A model generated the notes under the pieces. The model was not told the origin of the DNA and ran no database searches. It was given only the letters and a program-made list of their open reading frames with translations. From assembly GCA_030390025.1 (NCBI GenBank), contig CM059427.1, positions 188,728,001-188,792,000 of the forward strand: 64,000 nt of DNA. Direction: 5' to 3'. This DNA is from Squalus acanthias. Lineage: Eukaryota. Both the position numbers and the translations under genes were made by a program. Positions 4,482 to 63,914 of this stretch are shown piece by piece (positions within the stretch are counted from its first letter, which is position 1; each line of letters opens with the position of its first letter).

Positions 4482-4814
4482 ATTTATATCAAGAGAAATA
4501 CACGCTTTATCGGTCAGATCACAGTGAATTCGACCTGATTTGCTATAATGTTTACTCTTACAACATGGCTGCATGGACCTGGAGGTCACGTCATCTTCAA
4601 AATCAGGAGAAAGCAATAGCATCTGCTTCGATATCTCAGCTCATCAATGTAAACAGGACCTACTTTGGGAGTCGACTGGTGCCCACAGAGACAAAGTTTA
4701 ACGGCAAGAACTTCAGTGTGAGGATTGTCCCTGTGCTGTTTGAAGATGCAGGAGATTACACATGTTCTCTGGAATCATATAAAAGGGTGACCATTAAACT
4801 AATCACAGTTAAAG
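4482..4814 (+). CDS. Gene A exon, Ig V-like domain D3
   Basis: ttgcag|ATTTA...AAAG|gtagga. Translation LYQEKYTLYRSDHSEFDLIC..AAWTW..FSVRIVPVLFEDAGDYTCSL..ITVK has the B-strand Cys, C-strand Trp and DxGxYxC motif. Confidence 0.93.
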
Positions 4815-7800
4815 GTAGGAGACAGAATGTTGTCGTTGTTTTCAGTGATCAAGTCATTGTTTAAAATCTAAATGATTTTCTTGTTTACACAGTCACAGCT
4901 GAACCATCTGATGCAGTGACTGAGGGAGACACCGTTACCCTGACCTGCTCTGTCTCTGATGTCACTGAATTAATTAGACTTGTTTGGATCAATAGTGATG
5001 GCAAAACTGTTGGAGAAAAAACATTGAATGGACAGAATGGGGAAGAGAAATCATTGAGACTGATTATTCAGAAAGCTGATAGAGGCAGAGGGAACTGGAT
5101 ATGTGCTTTGTTTTATCAAATCAGGCCCCGGGTTTTAGTCCCGTACTATCTGGAGCCCAGTGGTAAGTGACTCAGGGTTTGCTCTTTATATTTATAATCT
5201 CGTTAGAAAATTCTGGTCACTTATTGTTCTTGTTGCCAGAAGTAGCCCCTCCTTTATATCCTGTGTGTGAGGCTCTACAGTGGGGCAGAGCCTCAGAAAA
5301 TCTACCCTGAGATAACTCAGCACGGCCTGGGATCGAGCTTGGAACTTTCCTGCTCTGTATGTCTCAACAACGCTCTTGGTAAACTCACTGAGGCAGCGCA
5401 AGCATTTTTTTGTGACAATAAAGTGGTACAGAAGCCGATTCTATTGGTTTTCTGATCCAGAATCAATCAGAATGCTGAGGCGGAATGCCCAGAAAATCAC
5501 AGCCAAAAATAATTCCCAGCTGCAAAAATTGCAATTGAAACTCTCCGCTCTTCAGGCTCAGAGAAACTCGGCGGGTCCATGGCGGGCAACATCGGTGACG
5601 GGCCCCAACCCCGCTACTGACTCCATCCTAGCCTCTGAAATGAATTTACCTTGATGGGGCTTATTAAGCCCGCCCAGCGAGTTCCCCGGCCAATTAGAGG
5701 AAGCGGGTCTGCTGACGTCATTTGATGACGCGTCATCAGCCGATTTCCTTAAAGGGACCATGGCCAACTTTCTTTTGACATTTGTGCTGTCAGTGTTCTA
5801 CAGCATTGAGGTGCTGCAAACACTGACAAGCACTGCACAGAGGCACAGGGCTGCACCAAGGCTCTCCCATGACTCCCTCCATGTGCTTATGGAGGGAGTC
5901 ACAGCACACAGGGAGGTCCTCTTCCCTTCCCATGGGCGGAAGAGATCTCCCCAGGAAATCAACACAGCCTGGTTGCACATTGCAGAGGAGGACATGAGCA
6001 AGGATGTGGTCAGGAGGACCTGGGTGCAGTGCCATAAATGTTTCAATAATCTCATTAGATCAGGAAACGTGAGTACAAAGCCACGCTCAACCTCATCCTG
6101 CTGTGCCTCTCATCACATCCCCATCACTCTGCCTTCGCTACCCTACATCTGCACATCCTTTCTCACACCAACTTAACTTGCACCCCCACCCATCCCTCTC
6201 TATCTACAATATCACATCCTCATCTTACTAGCCACTCCTCACACTTAACCTCATCCTAGTGTAATCAGACCAACTAACAACACACAAGGGTATGCACTTG
6301 GGTGTTTTATGCAATGTTCATGTAAAGTTTCTGTGGTGTCAAACATTGAAACCTTTATTTTCAACACGTTGTGTTCTTGGACAGATTTGTGTGCACCTTT
6401 GGAAGTGGCTTAATGAGTTGCAGTGAATGGTGAGACATAACTTCCCACTGCCCCCAGCCCCCCCGACAGGTGACAGTGGATAGAGAGATTACTCCAAACA
6501 CTTCAAAAGTGCATAAAGCTCAAAAGTGGGTTCCAAATCATTAATGCTCCAGCTTCTAAGGTTAGGGAGTGAACAGATGTGAAAGGGTAGGTTTTATGCC
6601 ACTTTTGCAGCTTTCACCTATTCACAGCAATCCACAGTCATTGAGAACCCGACATACTTACCTGACGTGACAGCCACTCTCCAGGAACCCCATTGAAAAC
6701 CTGTTTAAATTGTAAGTACATGGGAAAATGGTTCTTAACTACCTTTTAATAAGCTTTTAACTATCTAAATTGGCTGACCCGCCGCTTGGTGTCGGGTCTG
6801 TTTAGGGATGACAGACCTGACACTTGGGAAACTGACAAGGAGTCGGGTTTACAGCAGGATACTGACCCGCTGTCAATCTTTGTGATTTTCACAGCGGACC
6901 TGCCTCCAAACCTACCCTTTGAGCGCAGACAAAATTCAGCCCTTAGTTGCATGCAATTTATATTGCTCAACTAACTTCAGGACCAACTATCTGAAAATCC
7001 ATACAGGAAATTCAGATGCAGTGCTAATCAGGTGCAAAACAATAGCACAGGATTTGCATCCATTGTTCCTGTGCATGGTGCCCATTCTTCAGGTGGTATT
7101 TTGATGCTAAATCCAGTCGAATAACCACTTAAATGTTTGGGAACATTTTTCTTTTGTTATCCCATCTTTTGCACCATGTCCAACCTGAGACAGTGTGGAC
7201 AGACAGCCTATTTCCAGGTCTCTATCAAAGGTACCCTCCAACCTGCCACAGGGAGCTGCATGAGGTGAGTTGTTGCTGCTGTATCTTTTCACCGTCCATG
7301 CGGAATGCCCATCCACACTTTTCATACCTCCTTCTGAAACCTGGACTGAGATCGTATATTTGATTTGTGGCACATCATGGACACAAACTCATTCCATGGT
7401 AGTGTCTTGCTGCTGTAATATGCATTGTGGTGTCATTCCTGAAGAAGCACTGTCAAGGATTAATTCTTGCTCAATCAAGATCTACCCCGTTGAGTGCAGT
7501 TCTCATTCAAATAGCCATTATTCAAGTACAAGCCGAGACAATGAGGATCATTCGCCTAGTGTACAGCGGGAAGCATCACAGCTGAATTGGATCCTTTACT
7601 TACCAGTCATCTGCACACATCTCCTCTCCAGAAGGAATCACTGGATTGGAACCAGGAAGTAAAACCCTGTGTGATTTTTTTTCCCTGTCCCTAACTGAAG
7701 ACACTGAGGACAGTTGTAGCACTCCAACGTTCCTGAGTGAGGTCAGTGAACTTGGATCAGGAATTAAACCGAGGACCTTCTGGTCTATACGGCTTACTGG

Positions 7801-10800
7801 TAAATCAGGCAGTAGAGTTATCTACTGGGTCATTAGGGGAGCTTAATTTTTTTTAAGAAGTTACTCTATCAACTGAATGTGAAATCTATGTTTTTTTGTC
7901 TGACAGGTGATTACACTTTTAAACATATCATTGTCGTTATTTTCGGGAGTCTGGCTCTTCTCCTCATCATTATCCTGGCAGTGGTGCTGTGTCTAAGAAA
8001 GTGCAAGGTTGCAGGTAAGATATGTAGATTGCTAAAACCAATTTCAGGTTTCATACATGCAAAAAAATGTGAATGTGGCACCTGATTCCAAAAATTAGGA
8101 ATGTCAAAAATATATCCTTGTTTGAAATTAAATAATGTAATCCACTAGGATTAGATAAACAGATGTGTTTGTGTTTCTATGTGTCAAATATTCTCGGAAG
8201 GCAATAGTTCCTGAACTGCTAGAATGATGGGAGTTCTATACTAGGTTAAGCAGCTGGTCACAGATGAATAATAAGAACAACAATGTGCATTAATATAGCG
8301 CCTTTAAGGTATTAAAACCTCCCAAGGCACATCACAGAAGCATTCTAAAATAAAATTTGACTCTGAGCCACCTAAGGAGATATTAGGACTGGTGACCAAA
8401 AGCTTGGTCCAAGAGATCTGTTTTAAAGGGCGTCTTAAAGGAGAGAGAGGTAGCGAGACGGAGAGATTTGGGGAGGGAATTCCAGTGCTTACAGTCTAGG
8501 CAGCTGAAGGCACGGCCACCAATGGTGGAGCGATGAAAATCGAGGATGTGCAAGAGGCCGGAATTGGAGGAACGCAGAGATCTCGGAGCGTTGTAGGGCT
8601 GGAAGAGTTTACAGAGGTAGGGAGGGGCGAGGCCATGGAGGGATTTGAAAACAAGGATGATAATTTTTAATTGAGGCTTTGCCAGACTGGGCACAGTATA
8701 GGTTACAAGGTTAGATGGGTGTTCTGAATATTTTCTCAGTTATCTTTTAAATGAGGGGAAACATAATTTGGGACATTTAATAAGTTGGGTGGATTTCACA
8801 AAAGAATCATCGATACATGGTCTACAGGAGGAATGGGTTTAATGGGCTGAATGATCTTCATATATCAGACATTTTGCACTTATTTTGGTTATATCTGGCA
8901 ATGAAAATATTTGAAGGGCACAGGGATAAGCCAATATATTATAATCTATATAGCTTCATTCATTTTCTGACTGTAAGGAATTTTACCTGTGAAATGTAAC
9001 ACGCTGAGTTGAATAATGTTGATTTATCCTAGAGTTTTTCACCAAATGTGTGGATGGGCACATTTGTTGAAAACAGGATTGGTCTCAACTGTGATGCACC
9101 CTGATAACCTTGACTCTCTAGGTTCATAGAGGAAGGCTGGTTGCTTAGGTAACAGGCACCCTAGAGAAACAGTGAAAACAGATCGTGTTGATTCATTCAG
9201 ATGCAAATTAGATAGATTCCTTTCAGAAAATAACATTTTGGGAAATAGTAGAAGAGTAATTTGACACATAACATATGGTAAGCGTAACATGCTTGGGAGG
9301 AACAGGTGATCTTGAACCTGTGGCTCCCAAAGCTCTCCACCACTGGGGTTTTCCTCGCCTCATGCCTGGGTCTGTTGTAGACTAATTGATAGAGATTGGT
9401 AGAAGTTGATCTAAATGGACCTTGGTCTTTTTTCGACTAGCAGTTCCTATGTTCTTATGTTAGGTATTGAAGGGCTGATTTCATCCATAGAAGCCACAGG
9501 AAGCACTTTTGGGAAAGGGAGAAAAAAAAAATATCGAGGCTGATGCCTATAAAAGACTTTGGGCTGGATTTTCAATGACCCGTGGAGTCGGGTTTGGAGG
9601 CGTGTGGGGGGTTAAAGTTGCAGATTCGGGGGTCCTGACCCCATCCCGACTCCATTCCGCCTCCACGCAATTTTGACAAAATCGGTCGCGGGGTTCCCGA
9701 CTCCGTCCCGCCTCCAAGAGGCGGGAGAGGCCATTAAAGCCCTTAACAAGCCCTAAATTGGCTCTTTAATGCCATTTTGAAACGTTTTAGCAAGTTTAAC
9801 CCTTTTCCGACGTGAAGTACGCCTGATGTGAAACACGCCAGTGAAACCTGGCGGGAGCACAAGTGGATAGCAGACTATCAGGTGCAGGTCCACTATTACA
9901 ACGGAGATGTGATGAAGGTAGTAGTAGAATTAGGTCTGAAAGTCGCCTCTGATGCTGCTGAACTGAATGTCTTCAGAGACTGCCTGGGAGGACTTGGTTG
10001 CAAAAAAAAAATTCTCTCTCTCTCTCTCTCTCTGAGATGCTGCTCATTTTGCATCCAGGTCCTCTCACAGCAAAGGCCAGGCAACCTCTGAGACCAGGCA
10101 GTCTCTGACCTGCAATGATGACATCATCAGAGGTGACTTTCAGATTGAAACCACTAATTGGTTCATGGGTTCCCACATGCTGGAACTCAATTGCCCAATT
10201 AAGTGAAAATTGCATCAATCTCCCACATCCAATTGTAGGCGGGTGGATAACACGAAATGCGGTTGACACGACCCCAACCCACCCCAGTATCAAAATCCAG
10301 CCCTTTTAGTCTGGAACAGTTTTTACTCTACTATTGACAGTTGTCTTTGTAACAAAGTTTTCTGCAATGCCAAGCTGGGGGTATATCACCAGAGTGGTTT
10401 CTCTCATCTCCTGCCCTCCTCAGGAAGAGAAGTGCCTCTGATTGGTGGATATGCGTCTATGATAATATTTGATGAGGACACAATTAGTCTCAGCTGTGCT
10501 GAAGTCCACAGAAGAGTGATCCAACTATGCACATCGTCCATTCCCACAGAGGTAGCAACAGTCTGTTACTGCCCGTGGAACTGTAGTCCTATAATCGGGG
10601 AAAGAAAATAAGACATCTTATCACATAGAAACATAGAAACATAGAAAATAGGTACAGGAGTAGACCATTCGGTCCTTCGAGCCTGCACCGCCATTCAATG
10701 CGTTCATGGCTGAACATGCTACCTCAGTACCCCATTCCTGCTTTCTCGCCATACCCCTTGATCCCCTTAGTTGTGAGTGTTATATCTAACTTCCTTTTGA

Positions 10801-16800: not shown

Positions 16801-19800
16801 TCATCTCTAACGCGGAGGTGCGAGACTCTCCACATACTCACCGACTGAAGCCTGCAGGAAGAAACAAAGGTAAGTACACTTTTTCTAACACTTTCCACTT
16901 ACCTCACATACTCACCTCTCCACACTTGCACCCATCACTTATCTTCACAGCGCACTTTTGGACCCCGCAGACCCCCGCAGACCCACTACTCACCTCGGTG
17001 ACCGTGGCGGGTTTCGAAACCTTCGGGAAGCCAGCACTTGTGTGGGCAAAATGGGAATAATCCTCTTATCTGCCTGTTTACTACCTGTTAACAGGCAGTT
17101 AAGTGGCTGTAATCCCTTCCCGCCTCCAAGGAGACAGGACCCGGCGCGGGACGGCTTCCCACCTCCTTGCAAGATGGCACGGAGGCGGGTTGGGTACGGG
17201 TTGGGCACCCGGCCCAAGATTCTGCCATTTTCCCGGCAGTCCCGTCTCCAAACCCGCCTCCGCAGGGCTGGCAAAATCCAGCCCCTGAAGTGGGGCTTGA
17301 ACCCACAACCTTCAACAACAAGTGAATAAAAACAGAAAATGCTGGAAATACTCAGCAGGTCAGGCAGCATCAAATGAATAAGTTGGCCTGCAATGTATCA
17401 CCAAGTCTATATCTAGGGTTAACAGAGATATCAATGATATCTTGTCACAATGTCTTTCATACTTAACAAAACCTATCTGTGCTAATGGTCCATTTTAAAA
17501 CTGAGTTTGCTTATTAGAATGCCTGAAATTTATAAGGAAAGCTGAATGCATTTTCATAGGTGACCTCTGTATGAACAGGTTTGGGAAATCAAAGACAGAA
17601 ACCTCTGCAACCAGGAGAAAATATAGAAGATGCATCTCCGGTTTATTCAAATGCTAATGAAATGCATCAAATGCCAGGTAATATTTAAACACTAATAACA
17701 TAGTAGGAGTTTTACAAGTGCTGTGCTCCATTTGTTCATAGTATTATGAATCCCCTTTGTAATTTTCAGTTACACTTAAAAGACACTCAAACACAGAAAT
17801 GATGTGCCTTTATTCTGTCACATCCAAATATCCTGTAGAATCCTTCATAATCACTTCCCATTTTAATGATGTCTTCATTGCAGACTCTTCTTATTAAGCT
17901 TAGATCCTCGGATGCCGTGGGACATAAACTACTCAAAGATCACAATTATCAGCTCTTCCTAAACAACACCCAGGAGTAAGATTACTGCTGGTGAGACTGG
18001 TCGCAGTTACCCATCCAAAAACCTGTTGAAGCTCATTCATTGAAAGTATTTGGAACTCAAGACTGGGAATTAATCTGGAACCTTCTACAATATTATTTTA
18101 TGTCATGATGTGATTTCAATTATTTGTCATACTTCATATAAATTTGCAGGGTTACGGGGAAAGGGCGGGGGAGTGGGACTAGCTGAAGTGCTCTTGCAGA
18201 GAGTCGGCATGGGCTCGACGGGCCGAATGGCCTTCTTCCGTGCTGTAACCATTCTATGATTCTACGATTCTATATGCATGGCATTTTACAACAACAACAA
18301 CTTGTATTTATATAGCGCGTTTAACGTATTAAAACATCCCAAGGCGCATCACATGAGGGTCATCAAACAAAGTTTGACACCGAGCCACATGAGGAGATAT
18401 AGGGCAGATGGTCAAAAGCTTGGTCAAAGATTAGGCTTTAAGGAGCGTCTTGAAGGAGGAACAAGAGGTAGAGAGGCGTAGAGGTTTAGGGAGGGAATTC
18501 CAGAGCTTAGGGCGTTCGCAGCTGAAGGCAAGGCTGCCAATGGTGGAGCAATTAAAATCGGGGACATAAGAGCATAAGAACTTTAGAAATAGGAGCAGGA
18601 GTCGGCCATTCGGCCCCTCGAACCTGCTCTGCCATTCAATAAGATCATGGCTGATCTTCTACCTCATCTCCACTTTCCTGCACTATCCCCATATCCCTTG
18701 ATTCCATAATATCCAAAAATCTATCGATCTCTGTCTTGAATATGTTCAACGACTGAGCATCTACAGCCCTCTGGGGTAGAGAATTCCAAAGATTCACCAC
18801 CCTATGAGTGAAGAAATTTCTCCTCATCTCAGTCCTAAATGGCTGACCCCTTATTCTGAGACTGTGACCCCTGGTTCTAGACTCCCCAGCCAGGGGAAAC
18901 ATCGACCCTGTCAAGCCCTGTAAGTATTTCTATGTTTCAATGAGATCACCCCCTTATTCTTCTAAACTCTAGAGAATACAGGCCTAGTCTACTCAATCTG
19001 TCCTCATAGGACAATCCCCCCATCCCAGGAACCAGTCTGGTGAACCTTTGTTACACTCCCTCTATGGCAAATATATCCTTCCCTAGGTAAGGAGACCAAA
19101 ACTGTACACAATACTCCAGGTGTGGTCTCATCAGGGCCCTATATAATTGCAATAAGATGTCTTTACTCTTATACTCAAATCCTCTTGTAATAAAGGCCAA
19201 TATATCATTTGTTTTCCTAATTGTTTGCCGTACCTGCATGTTAACATTCAGCGATTCGTGAACAAGGACACCAGGTTCCTCTGACCACCAACATTTCCGA
19301 ATCTCTCACTGTTTAAAAAATACTCTGCTTTTTGAAGAGTCCAGCATTGGAGGAGCGCAGATACCTCAGAGGGTTGTAGGGCTGGAGGGGATTACAGAGA
19401 AAGGGAGGGGCGAGGCCATGGATGGATTTGAAAACAAGGATGAGAATTTTAAAATCATTACTTAACCAGGATCAAATTTAGCCAATTTTAACATAGTCCA
19501 ATCTTCATTAGGAGACTTTCAAACCATTAAAATTAATATAACACATCACACAGCAATAGCCTATGCTAGTTTAAATCTCACTTATCGTGTTATAGTTTGC
19601 TGTGTCTCCCAATTCACAGTGTGATTAATAGCTGCATTTTGAGTCCTTAACACTTCCCCTCTAAAAGAGAGCTCACACATTTCCTCAGATATCACCCGAC
19701 AACCATTAGATTCCTCCAAAACACGTCACAAATACTCTAGTGTTTCTAAAACCACTCGAGACAACTAGTGCCAAAGATTCAGAACGCCATGAATATCTTT

Positions 19801-23084: not shown

Positions 23085-23239
23085 TCTGCACAGGACAGAG
23101 AGGAAGAGCTTGGAGTTCGATATGTGGAATATAACATATTTGGGAATTGATACTTTTACCTGAGAACACATATGTAGCTTTCCTCCTATGCATTTACGGT
23201 TTAAATCAAACATGGTCATAGCAAATAATAATTCATATA

Positions 23240-27442: not shown

Positions 27443-27461
27443 TGGTGCCCTGGACAGGGAC
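27443..27461 (+). promoter_or_regulatory. Primer-binding site, tRNA-Lys-like
   Basis: TGGTGCCCTGGACAGGGAC directly after the LTR end; resembles the Lys PBS TGGCGCCCGAACAGGGAC. Confidence 0.6.
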
Positions 27462-29825: not shown

Positions 29826-30560
29826 ACCAGGTGGGTAGAAGCCTTCCCGTGCATATTGGCCACAGCCTCATGGATGGCCAAGACCCTAGTTAGAGAGGTA
29901 TTCTCCAGATGGGGACTTCCTCGCATGGTAGAGTCGGACCAGGGAGTCATTTCACAGGTCAGGTAATGCAAGCCACTCTGAAATTGCTAGGAATTGAAGG
30001 GAAATGGCACGTGACCCATAACCCGCAGTCATCGGGAATTGTGGAAAGAATGAACCGTACGTTGAAGTTGGCCCTGCAAAAGTAATTAAATGAACAGCAC
30101 ACTAAGTGGGATGAGATACTTCCCCTAATCCTTATGGGAATACGCAGTAAAGAATCCAAAGGATTGGGTCACTCCCCTCATGAATTGGTAACGGGGAGAC
30201 CCATGTGAACCCCCACCCACCTGTTGGTCCCCACTCTGACTGATAAACAAATTAAGGAGGTGACTCGGGACACATTCCTGAGCGACCTGTGGGGAACTTT
30301 GAAAGAACTGAACTTGAGGGCCACCCACAACATTGGGAAGGCACACCAACACAACCGACTATACTTGGCTCCGAGTAAACCCCAGGAGTGGGAAAGTAGG
30401 GAGCCAGGTAATGGTATGAAACTATGCGAGGGTGGGTGTCTTTGAACCCCTGTACAAGGGGCCGTATAGCATTGTTGATAAAGCTAGTCCCATTGGTGTA
30501 TGCGGTTCAGTTGCCTAAGAAAATTAAATGGTTTCATATTAACCAGATGAAGCTTTTTCA
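29826..30560 (+). pseudogene. Retroviral-type integrase core and GPY C-terminal remnant
   Basis: Hand translation with frameshifts: TRWVEAFP..REVFSRWGLPRMVESDQG/SHFTGQVMQ..HNPQSSGIVERMNRTLK..KWDEILPLILMGIRS..SPHELVTGRPM..YKGPYSIVDK..WFHINQMK. Confidence 0.88.
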
Positions 30561-34519: not shown

Positions 34520-34623
34520 GTGGAGGTGGTCCTACGTTTGTGTCCCATTATCACCTCCCTTTGCCTTGCAGCATCAGCCCTTTTTCTGGCTTGATCACTC
34601 CTGCACTCCACTCTATCCTTTAT

Positions 34624-40531: not shown

Positions 40532-40592
40532 ATGGTGAGAGGGCTGATGATATGTTGCTTTGTTCTGCTACATGGGTCTGTTTTCACACAGG
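40532..40592 (+). CDS. Gene B signal-peptide exon
   Basis: [20 protein letters not shown] followed by G|gtaagt; a phase-1 leader exon typical of IgSF genes. Confidence 0.85.
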
Positions 40593-49500: not shown

Positions 49501-52500
49501 TCCATTTTGCAAACTACAGGACAACAGGAAGAGCAGCAGGAAGCTACTGGTGGTGGTACTGGTGTTGGTGTTGGTTCTGATGTTGGTGTTGATGTCAGTG
49601 CTGGTTCTGGTGCTGGTTCTGGTGTTGGTGTTGGTGTTGGTTCTGATGTTGGTGTTGATGTTGGTGTTGGTGTTGGTGCTGGTTCTGATGTTGGAGCTGG
49701 TGTTGGTGTTGGTTCTGATGCTGGTGTTGATGTCAGTGCTGGTTCTGATGGTGTTGGTGTTGGTGTTGGTGCTGGTTCTGATGTTGATGCTGGTGTTGGT
49801 GTTGGTGTCAGTGCTGGTTCTGGGTTTGGATCAGGTCATGTTAAAGAAGAGGATGTGGGGAAGCACACCAGGCCAGGCCAAGAAGAACAAAAAGGTAAGT
49901 GAGGTACAGAATCATTGTGTGTGCTTTTAATATTTGCTTTCCTGGTGCTTCCCTTGCTGACAGTGTATAATGTGTGTCTTCTGCTCCCTAATCTTGTGCT
50001 CCTGCTAGCTCAGGTTTGGTCTGTTGCTCAGCAATGGGTGCCTTATGAGCTTCTGGATGCCATGTACCTCTTTGTGCTAGGTCATGTGATGGCCCAGCAA
50101 TTAGTGCCATCATTTAATAATCTGGAATCTTTGCAATGGAGGGAGATCAAGGACCAAGCCTACTGTAAGCTGGCTCCCTCTCCTCTGCTGTCACCTGCAC
50201 TTGCTCATCCTAACTTATGCTGGATGTTTCACCAGGTGTTCCCTTCTAACCATTAATAATTGAGGCATTGTTAAAACAATAGCATTGTTTAACTGATAAA
50301 GACAACTGATGGTTGCTGCCCTCTCTTTGCATGTTTCTATAATTCCTCATCTGTCTCTCTATTCCAGCTGAATTTGGTAAGCAGTATACAAGTTACTGGC
50401 CAATCTTTGGCCACAATTCGCTCTACCTGAACTGCAAAAGTGAGTCCAACTACAATCTGTCCATGTGGTATTGGAAAAATAAGAATCATCCAACAGAAAG
50501 GAAGGTTATATCTTCTGCTAATAAGAAGGAACAAAGGAATACAAATATCTTAGGGTATCGGAATCGAATCAATCTGCAACACTTTGATGGGATGAGCTTT
50601 CCTCTCCAGATTTCCCCTGCACAGTTTGAAGATGCAGGAACTTACACATGTACAATGGACTCAGCCAACCTGGTGACAATTCAACTGATAACCACCAAAG
50701 GTATGGCCTATAACTTAAGGCAGCAGGGCTGAAATTCTGCACGAACTCCATGAGTCTCCTGCTGTATCTCTGGTAGGAGATTGGTGGAACAAACCCCTGG
50801 GGAGATGACAGAAATGGCCATTTCTGTTGCTTCCGGAGTGGGGCTGCAGGCCTCCTGACGGAGTTACAGCAGGAGAATGATGGGACCGCATGGATTTCAG
50901 CCACAGACTACTTGACAAAGACCCTGAAGCCTTGCTGAGTCAATGAATGTATGATATGTAGGCTCCCAGTATTTGAGCATGGATGAAAGCAGGCAGACGT
51001 ATGGAATTGCACAGGGAGTCACAATGCACTTCTGTGAGCTGGCATTTTCACTCCATTTTAGAATCCAACATACATTGTGGAGCCTGAGGAAAAAATCTCC
51101 CTATGATAGGATTAAAGTGAGAAGTTGCACAACACCAGGTTATAGTCCAACAGTTTTATTTGTAATCACAAGCTTTTGGAGCGGCTGCTCGTTCGTCAGG
51201 TGAAGTGAAGAATACAAATCGGCAAAGCATATATAGACAGTCTCTCGAGCAGCAGCTCCGAAAGCTTGTGATTTCAAATAAAACTGTTGGACTATAACCT
51301 GGTGTTGTGCGACTTCTCACTTTTGTCCACCCCAGTCCAACACCGGCATCTTCACATTATGATAGGATTAGAGTTAGATTTAGGTTTCGGGTTAGCGTGA
51401 GATTTAAGGAGACTTTATGTGGGGCAGAAGATTTTATTTTGAGAGGTGAGAGGTGAGATGAATTCGCCAGAAGCAAATGTGTTACAGGGCACAATTATAA
51501 GCAGATTGGAAGGTAGCAAATGTAACCCCACTATTCAAGAAAGGAGGAAGAGAGAAAACTGAGAACTACAGGCCTGTAAGCCTGACATCAGTTGTCAGGA
51601 AAATGCTGGAATCCATTATTAAGGAAGTGGTAACAGGTTACTTAGAAAATCATAATATGATTAGTAAATTCAACATGGTTTTATGAAAGATAAATCGTCT
51701 TTGACAAATTTATTAGCGTTGTTTGAGGATGTAACGAGCAGGGTAAATAAAGGGGAACCAGTAGATGTAGTATATTTGGATTTCGAAAAGGCAATCAATA
51801 AGGTGCCACATAAAATGTTGTTAAGCAAGATAAGGGCACATGGGGTTGGGGATAAGGTATTAAGCATGGATAAAGGATTGGTTAACTGACAGAAAACAGA
51901 GAGTAGGGATAAACGGAGCACTTTCAGATTGGCAGGCTGTAACTGCTTGGGCCTCAGCTATTTACAACCTATATTAATGACTTAGATGAAGGGACTGAGT
52001 GCAATTTATCCAAGTTTGCTGACGATACAAAGCTAGGTGGAAAAGTAAGAAGTTAAGGGGGATGCAAAGAGCCTGCAAAGGGATATAGGCAGGTTAAGTG
52101 AGTGGGCAATAAGGTGGCAGATGGAGTATAATGTTGGGAATTGTGAGGTTATTCAATTTGGTAGGAAGAATAGAAAAACAGAATATTTTTTAAATGGTGA
52201 GAAACTATTAAATGTTGGTGTTCAGAGAAATTTGGGTGTCCTAGTTGAAGAAACACAGGGAGTTAGCATGCAGATACAGCAAGCAATTAGGAAGGCAAAT
52301 GGCATGTTGGCCTTTATTGCTAGAGGGTTGGAGTACAAGAGTAAGGAAGTCTTGCTACAATTGTACAGGGCTCTGGTGAGTCCACACCTGGAGAACCGTG
52401 CATAGTTTTGGTCTCCTTATTTAAGGAAGGATATACTTGCATTAGAGGCGGTGCAACAAATTTCCACTAGATTGATCCCTGGGATGAGAGGGTTGTCCTA

Positions 52501-55500
52501 TGAGGAGAGATTGAGTAGATTGGGCCTATACTCTCTGGAGTTTAGAAGAATGAGAGGTGATCTCATTGAAACATATAAGATTCTGACGGGGATTCACAGG
52601 GTAGATGCTGAGAGGTTGTTTCTCCTGGCTGGAGAGTCTAGAACTAGGGGGCATAGTCTCAGGATAAGGGGCCGGCCTTTAAAGACTGAGATGAGGAGGA
52701 ATTTCTTCACTCAGAGGGTTGTGAATCTTTGGAATTCTCTACCCCAAAGTGCTGTGGATGCTCAGTCATTGAGTATATTCAAGACTGAGATAGATAGATT
52801 TTTGACTCCAGAGGCATTAAGGGATATGGGGATAGTACCGGAAAGTGGAGTTGAGATCAAAGATCAGCCATGATCTTATTGCAGGCTCGAGGGGCCAGAT
52901 GGCCTACTCCTCTTTCTAATTCTTATGTTCTTACGATATTACAATTGGCCCTGAGCACCATCGAAGCATCCATCACTGCACCAATTGCACATCCTTTAAA
53001 TTATATCGAGGAGGTTTCATGTGTGAGCATGGCTGTAGCTGGTCAGAAGTGAACAAGGTGAAGAGTAGCATTGAAAATTTCTTAGTAAAATACTGATGGA
53101 ACTGTTTTGTAAAAATGATTGTAAAGTTTGATTGAATTCAGAATTGTTGATACTATAGAATCTGCTTCCACCAACCTTTCAGGCAGTGCATTCCAGATCA
53201 TAACAACTTGCTATGTAAAAAAACTTGTGGAGTTGGGAAGAGGAGGAACTTCAGGCAGCAGCTTCAGGCTACTGAAATTAGAGCCCACCAGAGTCAAACC
53301 ATCCAGACTCCAAGACACTTCAGTCTGTCACAGGAGCAATGCTTAAAGAAGCTACAGTTTTTTTATTTGTTTATGGGATCAGGGCTTCGCTGGCAATGCC
53401 AGCATTTATTGCCCATCCCTAGTTGCCCTTGAGAAGGTGGTGGTGAGCCGCCTTCTTGAACCGCTGCAGTCCGTGTGGTGATGGTACTCCCACAGTACTG
53501 TTAGGTAGGGAGTTCCAGGATTTTGACCCAGCGACGATGAAGGATCGGCGATATACTTCTAAGTCAGGATGGTGTGTGACTTGGAGGGGAATTTGGAGGT
53601 GGTGGTGTTCCCATGAGCCTGCTGCCCTTGTACTTCTAGGTGGAAGAGGTCACGGGTTTGGGATGTGCTGCCGAAGAAGACTTGGCGAGTTGCTGCAGTG
53701 CATCTTGTAGATGGTACACACTGCAGCCACGGTACGTCGGTGGTGGAGGGAGTGAATGTTTAAGGTGGTGGATGGGGTGCCAATCAAGCGGCTGCTTTGT
53801 CCTGGATGGTGTCAAGCTTCTTGAGTGTTGTTGGAGCTGCACTCATCATCCGGGCAAGTGGAGAGTATTCCATCACACTCCTTACTTGTGCCTTTTAGAT
53901 GGTGGGAAGGCTTTGGGGAGTCAGGAGGTGAGACACTTGCCGCAGAATACCTAGCCTCTGACCTGCTCTTGATGCCACAGTATTTATGTGGCTGTTCCAG
54001 TTAAGTTTCTGGTTAATGGTGACCCCCAGGATGTTGATAGTGGGGGATTCGGCGATGGCAATGCCATTAAATGTCAAGGGGAGGTGGTTGGACTCTCGCT
54101 TGTTGGAGATAGTCATTGCCTGGCACTTTGGTGGCGCGAATGTTACCTGACACTTATCTGCCCAAGCCCGAACGTCGTCCAGGTCTTGTTGCATGTTAAC
54201 TAGACCTTCAGTGACTCACATCTGCATTCTGCTACAGACCAATGAAGGGAAAACCCTGGAATCATTTAAGAAACAATTGGATACTGCAATGGGGAGACTG
54301 AGGGTCTTTCTAGCCACATGAACTAAGATGGGCCAAATAGTCTTCCTTATCCATAATTATCTTGTGAACTCTTTGGACTCAAAGAGAGACAATCTCTCGA
54401 AGCTGAGCTGAATTGCCCTATGCTGTGAGTTCAAACAGTAGTGGGTTGAAATTCTTAAGCTCCGTGAAGCCGTGTCATTGATGCCTGCAGCCCCCACAGT
54501 GAGGGGAATTTCCATCCTATACTATTAATCTTTGAACTGATTGCAAGTAGCTGCTCAAACCCGCATTACTTAGAATGGATGAGAGATCCAGGGCAGAAAG
54601 ATTACAATTTCCCATTACTGTATTGCTAACAATTATGAAAAATTCTTTGAATGAGGTAAGTATGAAAAGTGGAAATCTTAGGGCTGAAATATCCTGAAAT
54701 CCTCCATTACTGAAAATAAGACTCCTTTTTTGCAGTGACAGCGATTCCCTCTCCCCCTCTGTCTGAAGGAGACAATGTTAGCCTTACCTGCTCTGTTTCT
54801 CATGTCAGTGAAGCAACAAGACTTGTTTGGATGGAAAATGGCAGGAACACTCTTGTTAAAGAAAAAACATTTAATCCCCCGGGAGAAGGAAATAACAGCC
54901 TGTCGCTGTTCATTCAGAAGATTGGGCAACATAACAGAAGATGGACCTGCCTTGTATTTAATCAAACAATGCCAAAAATTTACATCACGTACCAGATTGA
55001 AGTTAATGGTAAGAGTTGTATTTATTTTATAATGTGCATGATTGGGGTGAATACTCCTGCTTTTAAAATTAACAATGAGTGATTCTTTGAACGTCATGTA
55101 TTGCACACACCATTCATCAATACTGCACACACCTTGCATAAGTACCCATTGCTGCCCTGTGCCCTGTTTTGTAATAGTGTAAAGTAATGCTATGGCACAC
55201 CATCAGATTTTGTACTTGTTCCAGTGGGCCTTGTGTTCTCAGAGCCACAGTATTTACATTCTTTGAACTTTCAACGTCTTACTTCCTGCTGTATTCGTCT
55301 GCAGTGCAATACACCCAGCTGAAGAACGAGAAGGATACCATTAGAGAGGGTCTGCTGAATACAAACTCATTTGCTGAACTGATTGCAACTCTTTTCTCAA
55401 TCATTCACTGTTGATTAACATACAGCCCTACTCCATCCTGTGACTTTTTGCATCATCTTGCAAAATTGCCACATATAACCGCAGTGTCGGTGAAGTCAAA

Positions 55501-58500: not shown

Positions 58501-61500
58501 GCTGATTGGTAGAAGACCTGAAGTTTTATAACAATCCTTTGATTAGATAATGGAAATAGTTTGTACCAACTAATCTGGGTTGGGTGTGAAGGAGCTGTTC
58601 CATAATATCCACATTTTTCTTGTAAAACTCTAAAATTTTGTATCTACATCCTCAATGACATGATTTTTTTTTCAGAGATTGCTTATTTGAACTATATTCT
58701 CGTTTCTGTGGTTCTTGTGATTCTTCTGTGCACCATTGCAGCAATAATGAGCTACCTGAGGCGGATCAATGAACCAGGTAAGAGAAATAGGTGTCTGCAG
58801 ATGATTCGGTCATTTGTACCAGAGAGAATGACGATGAAAACCCTAAGGACAATGCACCGTTACTTGCTCTTGCCCTGACGAGCACCTGCACAGAAATCGG
58901 AGCCCACATGACTTACAATAGTTTTAAGCGACTGTGCTGGAGCATTCACTGAGCAGAAGTGAGCAGTTGGAGGTGCCAAACCATGCCAAGGGACCAGCGA
59001 ACTGGAGGGTCAGGTCACATCCTAGCTTTGCTGAAGAGGACAGAGATGCGGACTTGGGGGATCCAGCATTTAAGAGAGAGATGATTTCAATGCACCAACA
59101 ATTGATGAATGTATTGGACTGCCTACCAGGCAGTTTCCAAAACATGATGGCTAGGATGGTGAAGTCCTCTACCAACGTGTGTGGGTATCATGCATGGCAT
59201 TGACAGTCTGGTGTCAACCATGGTGTGCCTGGTGCCTTCAATGGCCGGTGCAGCTGAAACCCCTCCCCCTCCCCCCAGAGAAGGCGATAACACCAGCATT
59301 GCATCTCTCACGGATACTCATGCTATGGTCATGCAGGCTGTGGGCTTAACCATCTCCTCTGCCTTGGCCAGGATGGGGTAAGAATGAATAGGGACTTCAC
59401 CTGGATCACTGACCCTCCTAGAGTCTGCGCTCTCATAGGTGCTGAGTGGTAGCCCAGAGCAGAGACAGTCATGCAAGGGAACGGACCACGATGCCATCTC
59501 TCATGATTACACTTCTGTACCCTCGCGACCCTCTGGGCCATTACACGTTCTGGTGCCAGACAGCATGCTGGACCAGACTGCCCTGACAGAGGCCGATTTG
59601 TGGGATTCTGCACCTGGGCCCTCTCGGACCTGAGCTTCGAGAGGTCCACAAGCATTTTATGAGCCCATGAGGCCACAGCAGCCTCCCTCCTCCCACGTTG
59701 CAGCCACTAAAGTCGGTGAGGTGGGGGTGTGGTTGGGGGGTGGGTTGGTGGCAGTAAATTGGTGAAAGAGCACTTTAGACAGGCATTATAGGGATTCGCA
59801 CCAGGGTGAGAAATAGACCATTCTGTAAGCTATTAAAACCACAATACTATTCAAAATCTTTGTGCGCAGAGTGTTCCTGCAGTTGCTGGAGATCTTGCAA
59901 TGGTAGTTAGCATGAATATCAATATTGGTGTTTGGGCAGATGCTTTTAATTGTAGGGTGGAAGGACTGGGACATATGTTAGGCATGGCTTTGACACAGGG
60001 GAGCATGGATAGTTTAGCTGAAGAACTCTACCAAACAGCTCAGGCTGCTGGAAACTTTTGGAACCCTCTCACTTCCTCACCATCCTCTATATCATCAGTG
60101 TCATGGAGGCTCCATGTGTTACAACAAAAACTTGTATTTATATAGCACCTTAAAGGTAGTAAAATGTCCCAAGGTGCTTACCCCCATTGCAGTGCAAAGC
60201 TATGCAGCAAACCAATAGCATACAGGACACTCTTTCTGAGTTGTATTGTCCAGGCATCTGAATCACTGTCTGAGGACTCCAATGGTTTGCTCCATGAGGG
60301 CTCCAGTTAACCTATGAATCTGACTGTAGCAAAGGTCTACTCTGCTGAGCCTGTGTTCCTAAGAGGAGGCATAAGCCAAGCGTGTAGGGGGTAGCACTCG
60401 TCTTTATTCCAACTTATCAAGGTTTCCGTGGCTCATCCGCCGAAGTTACGGCAGACCAGTGGGAAAACTTCTACATAAATTCACTCCTCATGTTGTCCAG
60501 TTCCCAAGTGAGGTAAGTCTATCACAGGAAAAGTACAAAGACACAAAATACACTAAACAGTCACGTTTACCAACCCTGACAATATGAACCAGCAGCTGAT
60601 GTTGATAGAAAAACGGGATGAATTTCTCAAACCTTTATGTAACTATAGAAACATAGAAGATAGGAGCAGGAGTAGGCCATTCGGCCCCTCTAGCCTGCTC
60701 TGCCATTCAATGAGATCATGGCTGATCATCCAAATTCAGAACCCTGTCCCTGCTTTCGCCTCATATCCCTTGATCCCTTTAGCCTGAAGAAATATATCCA
60801 ACTCCTTCTTGAATATATTTAATGAATTGGCCTCTACTGCCTTCTGTGGTAGAGAATTCCACAGGTTCACCACTCTCTGGGAGAAGAAATTCCTCCTCAT
60901 TTCTGTCCTAAATGGCTTAACCCTTATCCTTAGACTGTGACCCCTGGTTCTGGACTCCCCGACCATCGGGAACATCCTTTCTGCATCTAGTCTGTCCAGT
61001 ACTGTCAGAATTTTATAAGTTTCAATGAGATCCCCTCGCATTCTTCTAAACTCCAGCGTGTATAAGCCCAATCGATCCAATCTTTCCTCATACGTCATTC
61101 CTGCCATCCCAGGTATCAGTCTGGTGAATCTTCGCTGCACACCCTCCATGGCAAGAACCTCCTTCCTCAGATAAGGCGACCAAAACTGCATACAATACTC
61201 AAGATGTGGTCTCACCAAGGCCCTGTACAACTGCAGCAAGACATCCTTGTTCCTGTACTCAAACCCTCTCGCTACGAAGGCCAACATACCATTTGCCTTC
61301 TTACCTGCCTGCTACACCTGCATGCTTACCTTCAGCGACTGGTGCACAAGGACACCCAGGTCTCGTTGCACTTCCCCTTATCCCAATCTATTGCCAGTCA
61401 GATAATAATCTGCCTTCCTGTTTTTGACAACAAAGTGGATAACCTCGCATTTATCCACGTTATATTGCATCTGCCATGCTTCTGCCCAATCACCCATCCT

Positions 61501-63914
61501 GTCCAAATCATCCTGGAGTTTCTCGGCATCCTCCTCACAGCACACACGCCCACCCAGCTTTGTGTCATCTGCAAACTTGGAGATATTACATCTAGTTCCC
61601 TTGTCTAGATCATGAATATATATTGTGAATAGCAGGGGTCCAAGGACCAATCCCTGCGGTACCCCACTAGTCACTGCCTGCCACTCGGAAAAAGACCCGT
61701 TTATTCCAACTCTTTGCTTTCTGTCTGCCAACCAGTTCGCTATCCAAGTTAATACCTTGCCCCCAATCCTATGTGCCTTAACTTTACACGCTAATCTCTT
61801 ATGCGGGACCTTATCGAAAACCTTTTGAAAGTCCAAATACACCACATCCACTGGTTCTCCCTCATCTATTTTACCAGTTACATCCTCAAAAAATTCCAGT
61901 AGATTAGACAAGCACGATTTACCTTTTGTAAATCCATGTTGACTTTGTCCGATCCTGCCACTGTTTTCCAAGTGCTCTGCTATTACATCTTTTATAATGG
62001 ACTCTAGCATTTTGCCCACTACTGATGTCAAGCTTACCTGTCTGTAATTCCCCGTTTTCTCTCTACAACCTTTTTTGAATAGTGGGGTAACAGTAGCTAC
62101 CCTCCAATCCATGGGTATTGTTCCAGATTCCATCGAATGTTGGAAGATGATCAGCAATGCATCTACTATTTCCAGGGCCACTTCCTTAAGTACCCTAAGA
62201 TGTAGATTATCAGGCCCTGGGGATTTATCGGCCTTCAATCCAGCCACTTTCCCTAACACCATTTCCCTACAAATACTGATTTCTTTCAGTTCCTCCCTTT
62301 CATCAGACCCTCTGTTCCCCGACGTCTCTGGGAGGTTATTTGTGTCCTCCTTTGTGAAGACAGAACCAAAATATGTATTTAATTGAGCTGCCATTTCTTT
62401 GTTCCCCATTATAACTTCCCCTGCTTCTGACTGCAAGGGAACTATGCTTGACTTCACCAATCTTTTTCTCTTCACATATCTATAAAAGCTTTTACAGTCA
62501 CTTTTTATGTTCCCTGAAAGCTTACACTCATATTTTATTTTCCCCTTATTAATTAATCCCTTTGTCCTCCTTTGTTGAATCCTAAACTGCTCCCAATCCT
62601 CAGGTTTACTGCTTTTTCTGGCCAATTTATATGTCCTCTCCTTGGATCTTATGCTATCCCTAATTTCCCTTGTTAGCCACGGTTGAGTCACCTTTTTTGT
62701 TTTATTCTTATGCCAAACTGGGTGAACAAATTCTGTAGTTCATACATGCAGTCTTTGAATGTTTGCCATTGCCTATCCACCATCAACCCTTTGAGTGACA
62801 TTCCCCAATCAATCCCACCAAACTCGCGCCTCATACCATCGTAGTTTCCTTTATTTAAGTTCACTCTCCATTTTAATGAAGAATTCTATCATATTATGAT
62901 CGCACCGACCCAAAGGGCCTCGTACAAAAAGATTGCTAATTAATCCTTTCTCATTACATAATACCCAGTCTAAGATGGCGTGTTCTCTGGTTGGTTCCTC
63001 GACATATTGGTCCAGGAAACCATCCCGTAAACACTCCAGGAATTCCTCCTCCACAGTATTGTTACTAATTTGGTTAGCCCAATCTATATGTACATTAAAG
63101 TCACCCATGATGACTGCTGTGCCCTTATTGCACGCTTCTCTAATTTCCCTTTTAATGCCATCCCCAACCTTCGCATTACTGTTTGGAGGTCGATATACCA
63201 CTCCCACTAACGTTTTCTGCCCCATGGTATTTCTCAGTTCTACCCATACAGATTCCACATCATCAGAGCTAATATCCTTCCTTACAATTGTGTTAATCCC
63301 CTCTTTAACCAGCAATGCTACGCCACCTCCCTTTCCTTTTTGACTATCTTTCCTGAATATTGAATACCCCTGGATGTTGAGTTCCCAGCCTTGGCCACCC
63401 TGGAGCCATGTTTCCGTAATCCCAATCAAATCATATTTGTTTACCTCTGTTTGCTCAAATTGATTCAACTCACCTTCACAGATAATGAACAACAGAGGGA
63501 ACCAAACTGCAGTAGTATAATTCCAAGCACAGAGCCAAACACTGAAGAAATTCATTACTTTTCTGTCACTTTTCAAAAGAGAAGACCAGGTAATTAACAA
63601 ATTATATTTTGACAGCAACATTTTGATCATTCTCTTTCAAACCTCTTAACCTCAATATTTAATTGTACTTGTATCAAAGGTCCTACCCTGGATGAACAAT
63701 CCAACCTGCAGCCTTCAGATGCTGTAAGTAGATCAGTATTCACTTCAAACTTAGTGCAACAATTGAATTAGAGTCCTTAAATAAATCTTTAGGATAATGA
63801 ACTGGATTCAAAGTGAAGCTAGAAAGCTAATGTCTTCTTTTCATATTTGCTCAGAATCAAGGAGCTGCAGATGGAAATGAATCATCCGTAATCTATGGCA
63901 CAGTAATTAAATAG
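40532..63914 (+). CDS. Gene B (complete): 531-aa four-Ig-domain (V-C2-V-C2) CD4/LAG-3/G6F-related receptor with two ITIMs; join(40532..40592,40931..41272,48903..49175,50368..50700,54736..55008,58676..58777,63482..63589,63680..63723,63855..63914)
   Basis: Nine exons with canonical splice sites, total 1596 nt, uninterrupted ATG-to-TAG frame. Encodes a signal peptide, 4 Ig domains, TM, and IHYFSV and VIYGTV motifs. Confidence 0.9.
40931..41272 (+). CDS. Gene B exon, V-like domain D1 (B-strand Cys absent)
   Basis: tttcttgcag|AAGAC...AAAG|gtaggt. [49 protein letters not shown]. Confidence 0.9.
42062..43212 (+). pseudogene. Harbinger DDE transposase (HARBI1-like), one frameshift (about 42500) and one stop (43000-43002)
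   Basis: [41 protein letters not shown] (catalytic D appears as N), [24 protein letters not shown]. Confidence 0.92.
43512..45256 (-). CDS. Harbinger Myb/SANT-like DNA-binding protein, 451 aa; complement(join(43512..44467,44627..44789,45020..45256))
   Basis: Three exons with GT-AG sites (AGG|gtgagt, ttgcag|GCC, G|gtaagg, ttcag|AT) in one open frame; N-terminal [21 protein letters not shown] domain. Confidence 0.85.
48903..49175 (+). CDS. Gene B exon, C2-like domain D2
   Basis: gatgtag|TTGAA...CTGT|gtaagt. [35 protein letters not shown]. Confidence 0.9.
49548..49830 (+). repeat. (GGTGTT/GGTTCTGAT)n low-complexity tandem repeat
   Basis: Directly visible. Confidence 0.9.
50368..50700 (+). CDS. 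Gene B exon, V-like domain D3
   Basis: attccag|CTGAA...AAAG|gtatgg. [27 protein letters not shown]; 333 nt, same length as gene A D3. Confidence 0.92.
51115..51357. mobile_element. Penelope-like element remnant with inverted terminal segment
   Basis: About 75-bp inverted repeat (51115-51188 vs 51247-51323), GCTCCGAAAGCTTGTGA motif, and 13-bp TSD TATGATAGGATTA. Confidence 0.75.
51500..52933 (+). mobile_element. 5'-truncated degenerate CR1 LINE
   Basis: RT ORF fragments 51683-51889, 52121-52405 and 52451-52873. Confidence 0.9.
53365..54195 (-). mobile_element. CR1-group LINE 3' fragment, same family as 3365-4348
   Basis: [28 protein letters not shown] and a shared 3' UTR. Confidence 0.85.
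54736..55008 (+). CDS. Gene B exon, C2-like domain D4
   Basis: tttgcag|TGACA...AATG|gtaaga. [33 protein letters not shown] has the WxC motif. Confidence 0.92.
56871..57271. mobile_element. CpG-rich MITE-like insertion
   Basis: GGCCTAGAAAAC / GAATTTTTGGCCC imperfect terminal inverted motifs; abrupt composition change. Confidence 0.45.
57432..57962 (-). mobile_element. CR1 3' fragment
   Basis: WNSLP..KGIKGY ORF remnant and CR1 tail. Confidence 0.85.
58676..58777 (+). CDS. Gene B transmembrane exon
   Basis: ttttttcag|AGATT...CCAG|gtaaga. [34 protein letters not shown]. Confidence 0.9.
58870..59790 (+). mobile_element. Degenerate Harbinger Myb-gene last-exon remnant
   Basis: [23 protein letters not shown].. 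resembles ..[16 protein letters not shown].. in the Myb gene's last exon (43512-44467). Confidence 0.55.
60644..63447 (-). mobile_element. CR1 LINE, near full ORF2 with frameshifts, in the last long intron of gene B
   Basis: EN/RT ORFs 62851-63447, 61378-62691 and 60736-61287; same subfamily as 23240-26160. Confidence 0.95.
63482..63589 (+). CDS. Gene B cytoplasmic exon 1 (IHYFSV, ITIM)
   Basis: ttcacag|ATAAT...CCAG|gtaatt. [36 protein letters not shown]. Confidence 0.85.
63680..63723 (+). CDS. Gene B cytoplasmic exon 2 (44 nt spacer)
   Basis: atcaaag|GTCCT...TGCT|gtaagt. [15 protein letters not shown]. Confidence 0.85.
63855..63914 (+). CDS. Gene B terminal coding exon (VIYGTV, ITIM)
   Basis: tttgctcag|AATCAA... 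[19 protein letters not shown]. Confidence 0.87.
   Translation, partial: NQGAADGNESSVIYGTVIK

Follow-up and report, generated by a model that had tools for sequence, protein, structure and literature searches.

CD4 and LAG-3 share a V-C2-V-C2 order of immunoglobulin (Ig) domains, a WxC motif in strand F of D2 as well as of D4, and a genomic block, with tails marked by Cx(C/H) in CD4 and (F/Y)xxL(D/E) in LAG-3 (Takizawa 2023, PMC10768021). The available text of that study terms WxC 'very unusual' and sees in it the best argument for a duplication model, gives a single gene each for CD4 and LAG-3 in a genome as the default, describes LAG-3 as inhibitory through a motif similar to the ITIM (immunoreceptor tyrosine-based inhibitory motif), and considers the ectodomains too diverged for firm conclusions. 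Here, we analyse 64,000 nucleotides of the Squalus acanthias genome (assembly GCA_030390025.1, contig CM059427.1, positions 188,728,001 to 188,792,000, forward strand), hereafter the window, with positions counted from its first base. The window contains two receptor genes, A and B, which had been noticed in a sequence-only reading. They are probably inhibitory-form type I receptors of an unnamed family of ancient origin, found in cartilaginous as well as ray-finned fishes, that appears nearest to LAG-3/CD4 and G6F-like/G6B, and is neither CD4, LAG-3 nor teleost G6fL.

G6b-B is inhibitory and has tyrosine motifs in a pair, and G6F-like was reportedly likened to CD4/LAG-3 by Ohashi and colleagues in 2010. 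Teleost G6fL is described, in the accessible part of its report, as a four-Ig activating thrombocyte collagen receptor with a YxN motif and an ITAM (immunoreceptor tyrosine-based activation motif) divided between two exons (Hughes et al. 2012, PMC3528668). In the DICPs, two kinds of Ig domain alternate, two or four domains in all (D1-D2 or D1a-D2a-D1b-D2b), with C23 and C104 plus DICP-specific cysteines. They are clustered and occur in ITIM, charged-transmembrane, secreted or ambiguous forms; the portion of the source available reports them from teleosts, holosteans and coelacanth and lists no cartilaginous fish (bioRxiv 10.1101/2021.06.11.448072).

Genes A and B are both encoded on the forward strand. 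The last eight exons of gene A span 4482-23084, and gene B is present with its full set of nine coding exons at 40532-63914. Splice sites are canonical throughout (AG at 16 of 16 acceptors, GT at 15 of 15 donors). The gene B frame comprises 532 codons, including a single stop at its end (531 + stop), and the visible part of gene A comprises 354 (353 + stop), with no internal stop. Ig, transmembrane (TM) and cytoplasmic (c) exons are multiples of three in length and phase 1-1, until a 44-nt exon brings both genes to phase 0. The proposal that the genes are head-to-tail paralogues holds, given their shared strand and the similarity of their D3 (34% identity, E 1e-17) and D4 (44%, E ~1e-19). A tblastn search with relatives found no gene A D1 or D2 exons in 1-4481, where the gene is cut by the window edge, so the comparison of the paralogues covers D3 onward only. 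Searches used the window exons singly, with database proteins standing in for the whole genes. P0007 and P0167 proved colinear with gene B, at 62-83% identity in the Ig exons, and P0151 and P0001 with gene A.

The gene B ectodomain starts with a leader exon (40532..40592) that has an ATG, a signal peptide and a GT donor, and that matches residues 1-20 of P0007 and P0167 (tblastn, 75-76% identity). D1 is a single V-like exon (40931..41272; 78-79% identity to the same two proteins) with a WEW motif and without the B-strand Cys. D2 (48903..49175) is C2-type, with a canonical Cys...W...YxC core and no WxC (Pfam Ig_3 8e-7, I-set 2e-5; orthologues 74-83% identity). It is followed by the V-type D3 (50368..50700; V-set 1.6e-8) and the C2-type D4 (54736..55008; Ig_3 2.5e-7, C2-set_2 9e-5). 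Gene A shows the equivalent V-type D3 (4482..4814; phase 1-1, AG/GT borders, V-set E 6e-4, colinear with P0151 and P0001) and C2-type D4 (4893..5162; Pfam ig E 4e-7), the latter 92% identical to a Heptranchias perlo relative. The WxC claimed for D4 of both genes is present, as NWIC in A and RWTC in B.

Pfam assigns D3 to V-set, and D2 and D4 to Ig_3/ig/C2-set_2. Gene B D1, searched alone, has no Pfam match and no PDB match. In an alignment of 21 full-length relatives (A3), D2, D3 and D4 each keep a Cys...Trp...Cys core. The D4 WxC tryptophan stands two residues before the strand-F Cys in 20 of 21 members (at least 90% of rows), and D2 has an invariant YxC (Y201, C203; RYAC in gene B) in place of WxC. 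As in gene B, D1 lacks the B-strand Cys and has the conserved WEW motif. Because the D1 profile of the family matches that of D3 (hhalign 95.8%, E 8e-9) and D2 matches D4 (96.0%, E 4.5e-9), over cross pairs at 1-80%, the V-C2-V-C2 cassette looks like a duplicated V-C2 unit. The domain order proposed earlier for gene B therefore stands, although D1 is not recognised by Pfam and owes its V-like status to the profile match with D3.

The TM exons of gene A (7907..8014; 71% identity to P0151 by tblastn) and gene B (58676..58777) were delimited by their splice sites. Hydropathy and the exon translations bear out that both segments are uncharged; that of gene A is followed by CLRKCK. The gene A tail continues with exon c1 (17579..17677; 75% identity to the P0151 tail), which carries YSN, a Grb2-type YxN motif, within PVYSNA, and with c2 (19958..20035; matched by P0001 residues 1625-1650), which carries AEYATV. 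In several relatives the c2-type motif is SEYATV or SEYATI, in which the S at -2 fits the ITIM consensus. The cytoplasmic exons of gene B lack YxN. Both genes then have, in order, a c3 exon with a first ITIM (57 nt at 21069..21125 in A; 108 nt at 63482..63589 in B), a 44-nt spacer exon (22831..22874; 63680..63723), and a last coding exon with a second ITIM (23013..23084, stop TGA; 63855..63914, stop TAG). The spacers share the identical shift from phase 1 to phase 0 and match each other at the nucleotide level.

The four tyrosine motifs are where the sequence-only reading had placed them: IHYGSI (21086-21103) and SVIYAQI (23043-23063) in A, IHYFSV (63550-63567) and SVIYGTV (63885-63905) in B. 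All four (IHYGSI, VIYAQI, IHYFSV and VIYGTV) fit the ITIM consensus (I/V/L/S)xYxx(I/V/L). The additional claim of a switch motif (ITSM) is not borne out, as the canonical TxYxxV/I matches no tail exon of either gene. The ITIM tyrosines are 39 residues apart in both genes, with 38 codons between them (31 + 44 + 39 bases), a spacing that on the exon maps is fixed by their common exon design. Neither Cx(C/H) nor (F/Y)xxL(D/E) occurs in the translations of all 10 TM and tail exons, and the ITAM pattern Yxx(L/I)x6-12Yxx(L/I) is absent from both genes. Among 160 family proteins scanned, the ITAM pattern occurs in two, both Hemitrygon isoforms with two ITIM-type tyrosine motifs. Tails of teleost members have a common motif order of YxN, then (I/V)HY, then V(I/V)Y.

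Spliced RNA-like contigs of gene B exist in two organisms, the spliced state being read from exon-only coverage. Runs X1-X5 contain 0.12-0.24 of the sampled words of 54400-55400, roughly the part taken up by the D4 exon, which makes up 0.27 of that stretch. Over 58600-64000 we compared contigs of X1, X2, X4 and X6, which carry no expression level or tissue information. X1 has no depth at all over the bins of unique intron sequence (58781-59142, 59324-60047 and 60229-60590). In the bins of the TM, 108-nt, 44-nt and last exons, X1 depths equal, by arithmetic, 15.4 times about 100, 101, 46 and 146 covered bases. This depth of 15.4 is that of one 1361-nt contig, which accounts for the coverage of all four exons. 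An X1 contig piece at 63855-64000 begins exactly at the start of the last exon and has 0 mismatches to the window end. X4, from the second organism, has the same coverage pattern and a 215-nt contig that starts at 63479. X2 covers no gene B exon in this region. X6 covers all bins at ~95% identity and looks like DNA of a relative, because introns are included.

A 57-nt version of the gene B c3 exon was considered and rejected, since orthologue tails and contig pieces of X1 and X4 that start at 63479-63482 favour an exon start at 63482. The 1361-nt contig differs from the window at 58720 and at 63513-63529; the latter differences lie upstream of the 57-nt version, and the 108-nt version is therefore the one used. 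Within the intron between the TM and c3 exons of gene B, 59143-59323 has depths of 16.2 (X1), 14.3 (X2) and 7.4 (X4), and the open reading frame (ORF) at 58934-59203 has no Pfam match. Since X2 has depth there but covers no gene B exon in the compared region, the probable source is a transcribed repeat and not an extra exon.

A two-sequence profile of the D3 exons of A and B, searched against 1.84 billion representatives, yielded 335 matches at E<=1e-3, of which 87 reach E<=1e-10 and 14 reach E<=1e-30. The 20 of 150 listed matches for which names were looked up are automatic models named 'uncharacterized' or 'hypothetical'. Shark relatives among them come from Heptranchias perlo, Heterodontus francisci, Pristiophorus japonicus, Chiloscyllium and Scyliorhinus canicula; chimaeras are represented by Callorhinchus milii, and ray-finned fishes by bichirs, sturgeons, eels, bonefish, tarpon and carp. 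With P0007 as query, 64 chondrichthyan proteins were retrieved, and 82 with alignment A3; eel, halosaur, tarpon and salmonid supplied 32 further relatives. None of the 82 is named CD4, LAG-3, G6F or DICP, the other names being obscurin-like (two), VCAM1-like (two) and CD276 homolog (one). CD4 or LAG-3 names are likewise absent from the 32 eel-to-salmonid proteins and from 36 teleost cluster members. No G6F-like name occurs among those 36 salmonid/teleost members, in 10 clusters, which indicates that teleost members of the family are separate, unnamed genes. Word-indexed homology searches returned family members only, and none reached CD4, LAG-3, G6fL or DICP.

A full-text literature search, whose coverage leaves out most subscription journals and supplements, found no published description of the family. 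We consider it a real and probably undescribed paired receptor family of the Ig superfamily (IgSF) on a CD4/LAG-3-like scaffold, and its public sequences are unnamed models. Two of its database entries appear to be imperfect. The only submitter-named one, P0176 (nurse shark 'Obscurin-like protein', UniProt V9NJF3), has a C-terminus that matches the other reading frame of the homologue of gene A exon c1, which makes a mis-read tail probable. In P0001 (S. canicula LOC119965406), residues 1-32 match reverse-transcriptase copies of long interspersed nuclear elements (LINEs) in the window, and the start of this protein is probably mis-predicted.

The family divides into two lineages in cartilaginous fishes. 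For D3-D4, a quick IQ-TREE analysis of database proteins (LG+G4, midpoint root) used 102 different rows (112 before identical rows were dropped) and 202 columns; support is by the Shimodaira-Hasegawa-like approximate likelihood ratio test (SH-aLRT) only, and several long branches were flagged. The tree contains a B-type clade of 12 rows, each from a different species, that extends from Callorhinchus to sharks and rays (SH-aLRT 96), a bony-fish clade of 5 rows (96) and an A-type (A/K-type) clade of 84 rows with many copies per species (96). The window's own exons were placed in the D4 tree only, where the gene B exon falls within a 24-row clade (97) with B-type and bony-fish rows. Judged by these trees, gene B is a conserved one-per-species lineage and gene A belongs to the expanded one. 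Gene B is thus not the diversified copy that the sequence-only reading had made of it.

In stand-in proteins from other species, A-type and B-type sequences are 31% identical in D1, 49% in D2, 32% in D3 and 37% in D4, against 58-72% within a type. This agrees with the earlier observation that the V domains are the most diverged while exon phases and tyrosine motifs are kept. Gene numbers are consecutive in S. canicula (LOC119965405-07) and Pristis (LOC127570086-88), which suggests that the A-B neighbourhood is old, as far as numbering, rather than maps, can tell. Many of the A-type models comprise 8 Ig domains, with 15 in P0001, and forms with 8-16 occur in the A lineage; the longest may be fused predictions.

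A census of tails covered 82 chondrichthyan representatives of 90% clusters, isoforms included, so that its counts are not counts of genes. ITIM tails occur in 49, a Lys in the TM segment with a short tail in 10, and an Arg in the TM segment in 4; truncated or unclear sequences make up the remaining 19. Outside the membrane, an ITIM form and a Lys-TM form can be near-identical (P0196 vs P0006; P0001 unit 4 vs P0197). Because ITIM and charged-TM forms have near-identical ectodomains, the gene A lineage looks like a paired inhibitory/activating receptor system. The earlier description of a diversified inhibitory multigene family is therefore right as to multigene and wrong as to purely inhibitory. 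D3-D4 branch lengths are 0.001-0.08 for P0196 vs P0006 (Pristiophorus japonicus) and P0229 vs P0178 (Mobula birostris). Such near-identical pairs of ITIM and Lys- or Arg-TM forms may come from a single gene with alternative 3' exons, or from very recent duplication.

The family resembles KIR, LILR, SIRP, CD300 and NITR in combining ITIM-tailed members with charged-TM, short-tailed ones that have near-identical ectodomains, and in its tandem clusters. Unlike these, it is built as (V-C2-V-C2)n, is older and has another taxon range.

Comparison with solved structures points towards LAG-3. Four relatives were used as queries against the sequences of 177,635 chains in the PDB. LAG-3 ranks first for P0007 (6e-9), first for P0151 (5.5e-4, three matches in total) and second for P0130 (2.6e-6). 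D3(F-G)+D4 of P0007 aligns to D1(F-G)+D2 of LAG-3 and also to its D3+D4, WxC on WxC, with the P0007 D4 motif meeting that of LAG-3 D2. The gene B D3 exon matches D1 of human CD4 (phmmer E 1e-4). Like LAG-3 and CD4, members of the family would be type I membrane proteins with V-C2-V-C2 order, a duplicated V-C2 unit and a strand-F WxC in the C2 domain next to the membrane. Unlike them, they have a single-exon D1 without the B-strand Cys, WxC in D4 and not in D2, and a tail of several small exons with two canonical ITIMs and no Cx(C/H) or (F/Y)xxL(D/E). The family is also multigene, with Lys-TM partners and 8-16-Ig forms. Six full-length relatives gave no match at E<=0.1 to the CD4-specific Pfam family PF05790, nor to PF09191 and PF12104, which we take to be CD4-specific as well.

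With both tail motifs absent, CD4-specific Pfam families unmatched and orthologues of its own across Chondrichthyes beside ray-finned relatives, the locus is neither CD4 nor LAG-3, as originally proposed. The companion claim, that the receptors are CD4-related, fared less evenly. Among solved structures, LAG-3 ranks first for two of the four relatives and the WxC motifs align, but WxC is found in D4 alone and pIgR and CEA rank higher with the full-length profile. Together, these results suggest kinship with CD4/LAG-3, not membership.

Could the family nevertheless be a third CD4/LAG-3 lineage, a sister of the MHC (major histocompatibility complex) class II co-receptors that kept or acquired ITIMs and may bind MHC class II-like ligands? 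We regard this as possible but doubtful. The duplicated V-C2 unit, the LAG-3 ranks for three of the four queries, the match of gene B D3 to CD4 D1 and the presence of CD4 clusters among structural neighbours in the ESM Atlas are all consistent with it. So is the strand-F WxC in D4 of 20 of the 21 aligned members, which aligns with that of LAG-3 D2 and is the feature given such weight in the available text of PMC10768021. Set against these are the D2 domain without WxC, the tails without either hallmark motif, the unmatched CD4-specific Pfam families and the complete lack of CD4/LAG-3 names (0/82, 0/32 and 0/36). E-values are also modest, and other IgSF proteins score alike.

Predicted features lead in another direction. 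For both P0007 (shark B-type) and P0130 (tarpon), the top three clusters by ESM Atlas features are 'putative g6f-like', 'g6f-like isoform X9' and G6b-B, at scores of 0.96-0.97 with 193-202 of 256 features in common. The suggestion of a G6F-like/G6b link in the sequence-only reading is echoed by these clusters, but not by PF15096, the G6B Ig domain carried by the Atlas G6b-B cluster, which was not matched in six relatives at E<=0.1, nor by an ITAM. Because other IgSF clusters score 0.95-0.96, kinship with G6F-like/G6B is a lead only. Like G6fL, the family has four Ig domains, a single TM segment and a short tail, with YxN in gene A and many relatives, though not in the gene B tail; unlike G6fL, genes A and B have ITIMs and no ITAM. 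This comparison draws on Atlas features and the published description. Likenesses to G6b-B are the predicted inhibitory character and paired tyrosine motifs, together with the third rank of its cluster for both queries. The family differs from G6b-B in having at least four Ig domains, no PF15096 match and no ITSM. DICPs, compared by the accessible description only, are similarly multigene, with two alternating Ig types and both ITIM and charged-TM forms. Their domains have both canonical cysteines, as do D2, D3 and D4 here, whereas D1 lacks the first in gene B and in the alignment.

These resemblances raise the tentative alternative, which we consider unlikely on balance, that the CD4/LAG-3 likeness is generic or convergent and that the family is the cartilaginous-fish counterpart of the MHC-linked DICP or G6F-like/G6B genes. 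The make-up of DICPs in the part of the preprint available (alternating Ig types, ITIM and charged-TM forms, clusters) matches that of the family, two distant queries share g6f-like (two clusters) and G6b-B as their top three in the Atlas, and the four Ig domains and YxN reported in the accessible text of PMC3528668 recur here, YxN in gene A and many relatives. However, the B-strand Cys that the available description gives as conserved in DICP is missing from D1. The ITAM pattern is confined to two of 160 proteins, both ITIM-type Hemitrygon isoforms and neither a window gene. PF15096 is unmatched, and the G6F-like name is absent from all 36 salmonid/teleost members.

We favour the reading of genes A and B as inhibitory-form receptors of a separate family, plausibly kin, by its domain and motif make-up, to both CD4/LAG-3 and G6F-like. 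Under this reading, the outer Ig domains would bind a ligand, after which Src-family kinases would phosphorylate both ITIMs. The tandem-SH2 phosphatases SHP-1/SHP-2 could then dock on the phosphorylated motifs and dampen ITAM-driven activation of the blood cell that bears the receptor. Several points weigh against the overall interpretation. ITIM function, SHP binding, ligand and cell type in this scheme are all inferred from motifs, and the 39-residue tyrosine spacing is longer than in well-studied tandem-ITIM receptors. The 5' exons of gene A were not seen, and a search of the window found no Lys-TM exon that could belong to an activating partner. Transcription over the exons, a premise of the sequence-only reading, is supported for gene B from the TM to the last exon by the X1 and X4 contigs, but the 'RNA' kind of the runs is a program guess and the exon-exon joints themselves are not displayed.

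The kinship evidence has further weak points. NCAM1 ranks above LAG-3 for P0130, and P0040 has no PDB match at E<=1e-4, LAG-3 included. The full-length family profile, whose PDB matches are dominated by summed scores of many-Ig proteins, ranks pIgR (4e-13) and CEA (1.4e-12) just above LAG-3 (2.9e-12). D4 alone, or a two-sequence D4 profile, gives only short, non-discriminating matches to PD-1, CD22, CD276 and CD4, and WxC is present in D4 only and absent from D2. In the Atlas, other IgSF clusters (HEPACAM2, CEACAM, contactin) score 0.95-0.96 and are hardly separable from G6F-like. Structural neighbours include g6f-like and CD4 clusters, with template-modelling (TM) scores of only 0.28-0.40.

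A more speculative idea, to which we give little credence, is that the family represents, as a survivor, the stock that gave rise to the MHC class II co-receptor pair CD4/LAG-3 as well as to G6F/G6B, the platelet receptors of MHC class III. The gene B lineage would then have been an inhibitory checkpoint receptor, with a conserved and possibly MHC class II-like ligand, since before the split of cartilaginous and bony fishes. The idea comes from the ectodomain being nearest to LAG-3 and from the A-type tail, which joins a G6F-style YxN with a G6B-style inhibitory tyrosine pair.

Membership of the SLAM/CD2 or CEACAM type, with an N-terminal V domain without disulfide and tyrosine-motif tails, is very improbable. 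It would fit D1 without its B-strand Cys, the CEACAM-like NCBI auto-names of a few isoforms, and the profile match to CEA, which is built from five weak stretches. We reject it because the tails have no TxYxxV/I switch motif, D3 adds, unlike in CEACAM, another V domain whose disulfide is complete, and no SLAM or CD2 family chain or cluster is among the PDB or Atlas matches listed. That one or both genes are decaying, non-functional copies, with introns full of LINE, endogenous retrovirus and Harbinger insertions, could be argued from the large intron transposon load, a LINE end just before the gene B c3 acceptor and gene A 5' exons beyond the view of the window, but is rejected as highly unlikely, for gene B in particular, given open frames and canonical splice sites throughout, spliced RNA-like contigs for gene B, and orthologues conserved from chimaera to rays.

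Besides genes A and B, the selected ORFs that were searched gave coding matches in the window to transposable elements only. The intron of gene A between the TM and c1 exons holds a LINE on the reverse strand with an intact 978-aa ORF2 (12864-15800; endonuclease and reverse transcriptase by Pfam), directly upstream of which is a truncated near-copy on the same strand (11155-12498). Related copies lie at 23188-26061 (+) and 60645-63472 (-), the latter ending ~10 bp before the acceptor of gene B c3. Harbinger-type remains occupy 42062-45256 in the D1-D2 intron of gene B, with ORFs for a DDE_Tnp_4 transposase (42508-43002, +, E 1e-33) and a Myb/SANT-like protein (44675-45256, -, E 5e-10). In the D2-D3 intron of gene B, overlapping ORFs at 49432-49930 translate to long GV/GS and LV repeats, which points to a simple dinucleotide-rich tandem repeat. 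In the A-B intergenic space (26746-32960), the ORFs at 27391-27849 and 31532-32077 have no Pfam match at E<=1e-3.

A family that extends from chimaeras to salmonids and combines a duplicated V-C2 unit, WxC and canonical ITIMs with, for some members, activating-type partners bears on the question of how CD4 and LAG-3 originated. It offers a new comparator for rooting trees of CD4/LAG-3 and of G6F-like, and for testing whether the MHC and 12p13 paralogous regions are linked as proposed. Gene B is a good candidate for ligand hunting because it is conserved one-to-one from chimaera to rays. Cartilaginous fishes may already possess clusters of paired receptors on the megabase scale, arranged on the principle of KIR and LILR, with a CD4/LAG-3-like scaffold.

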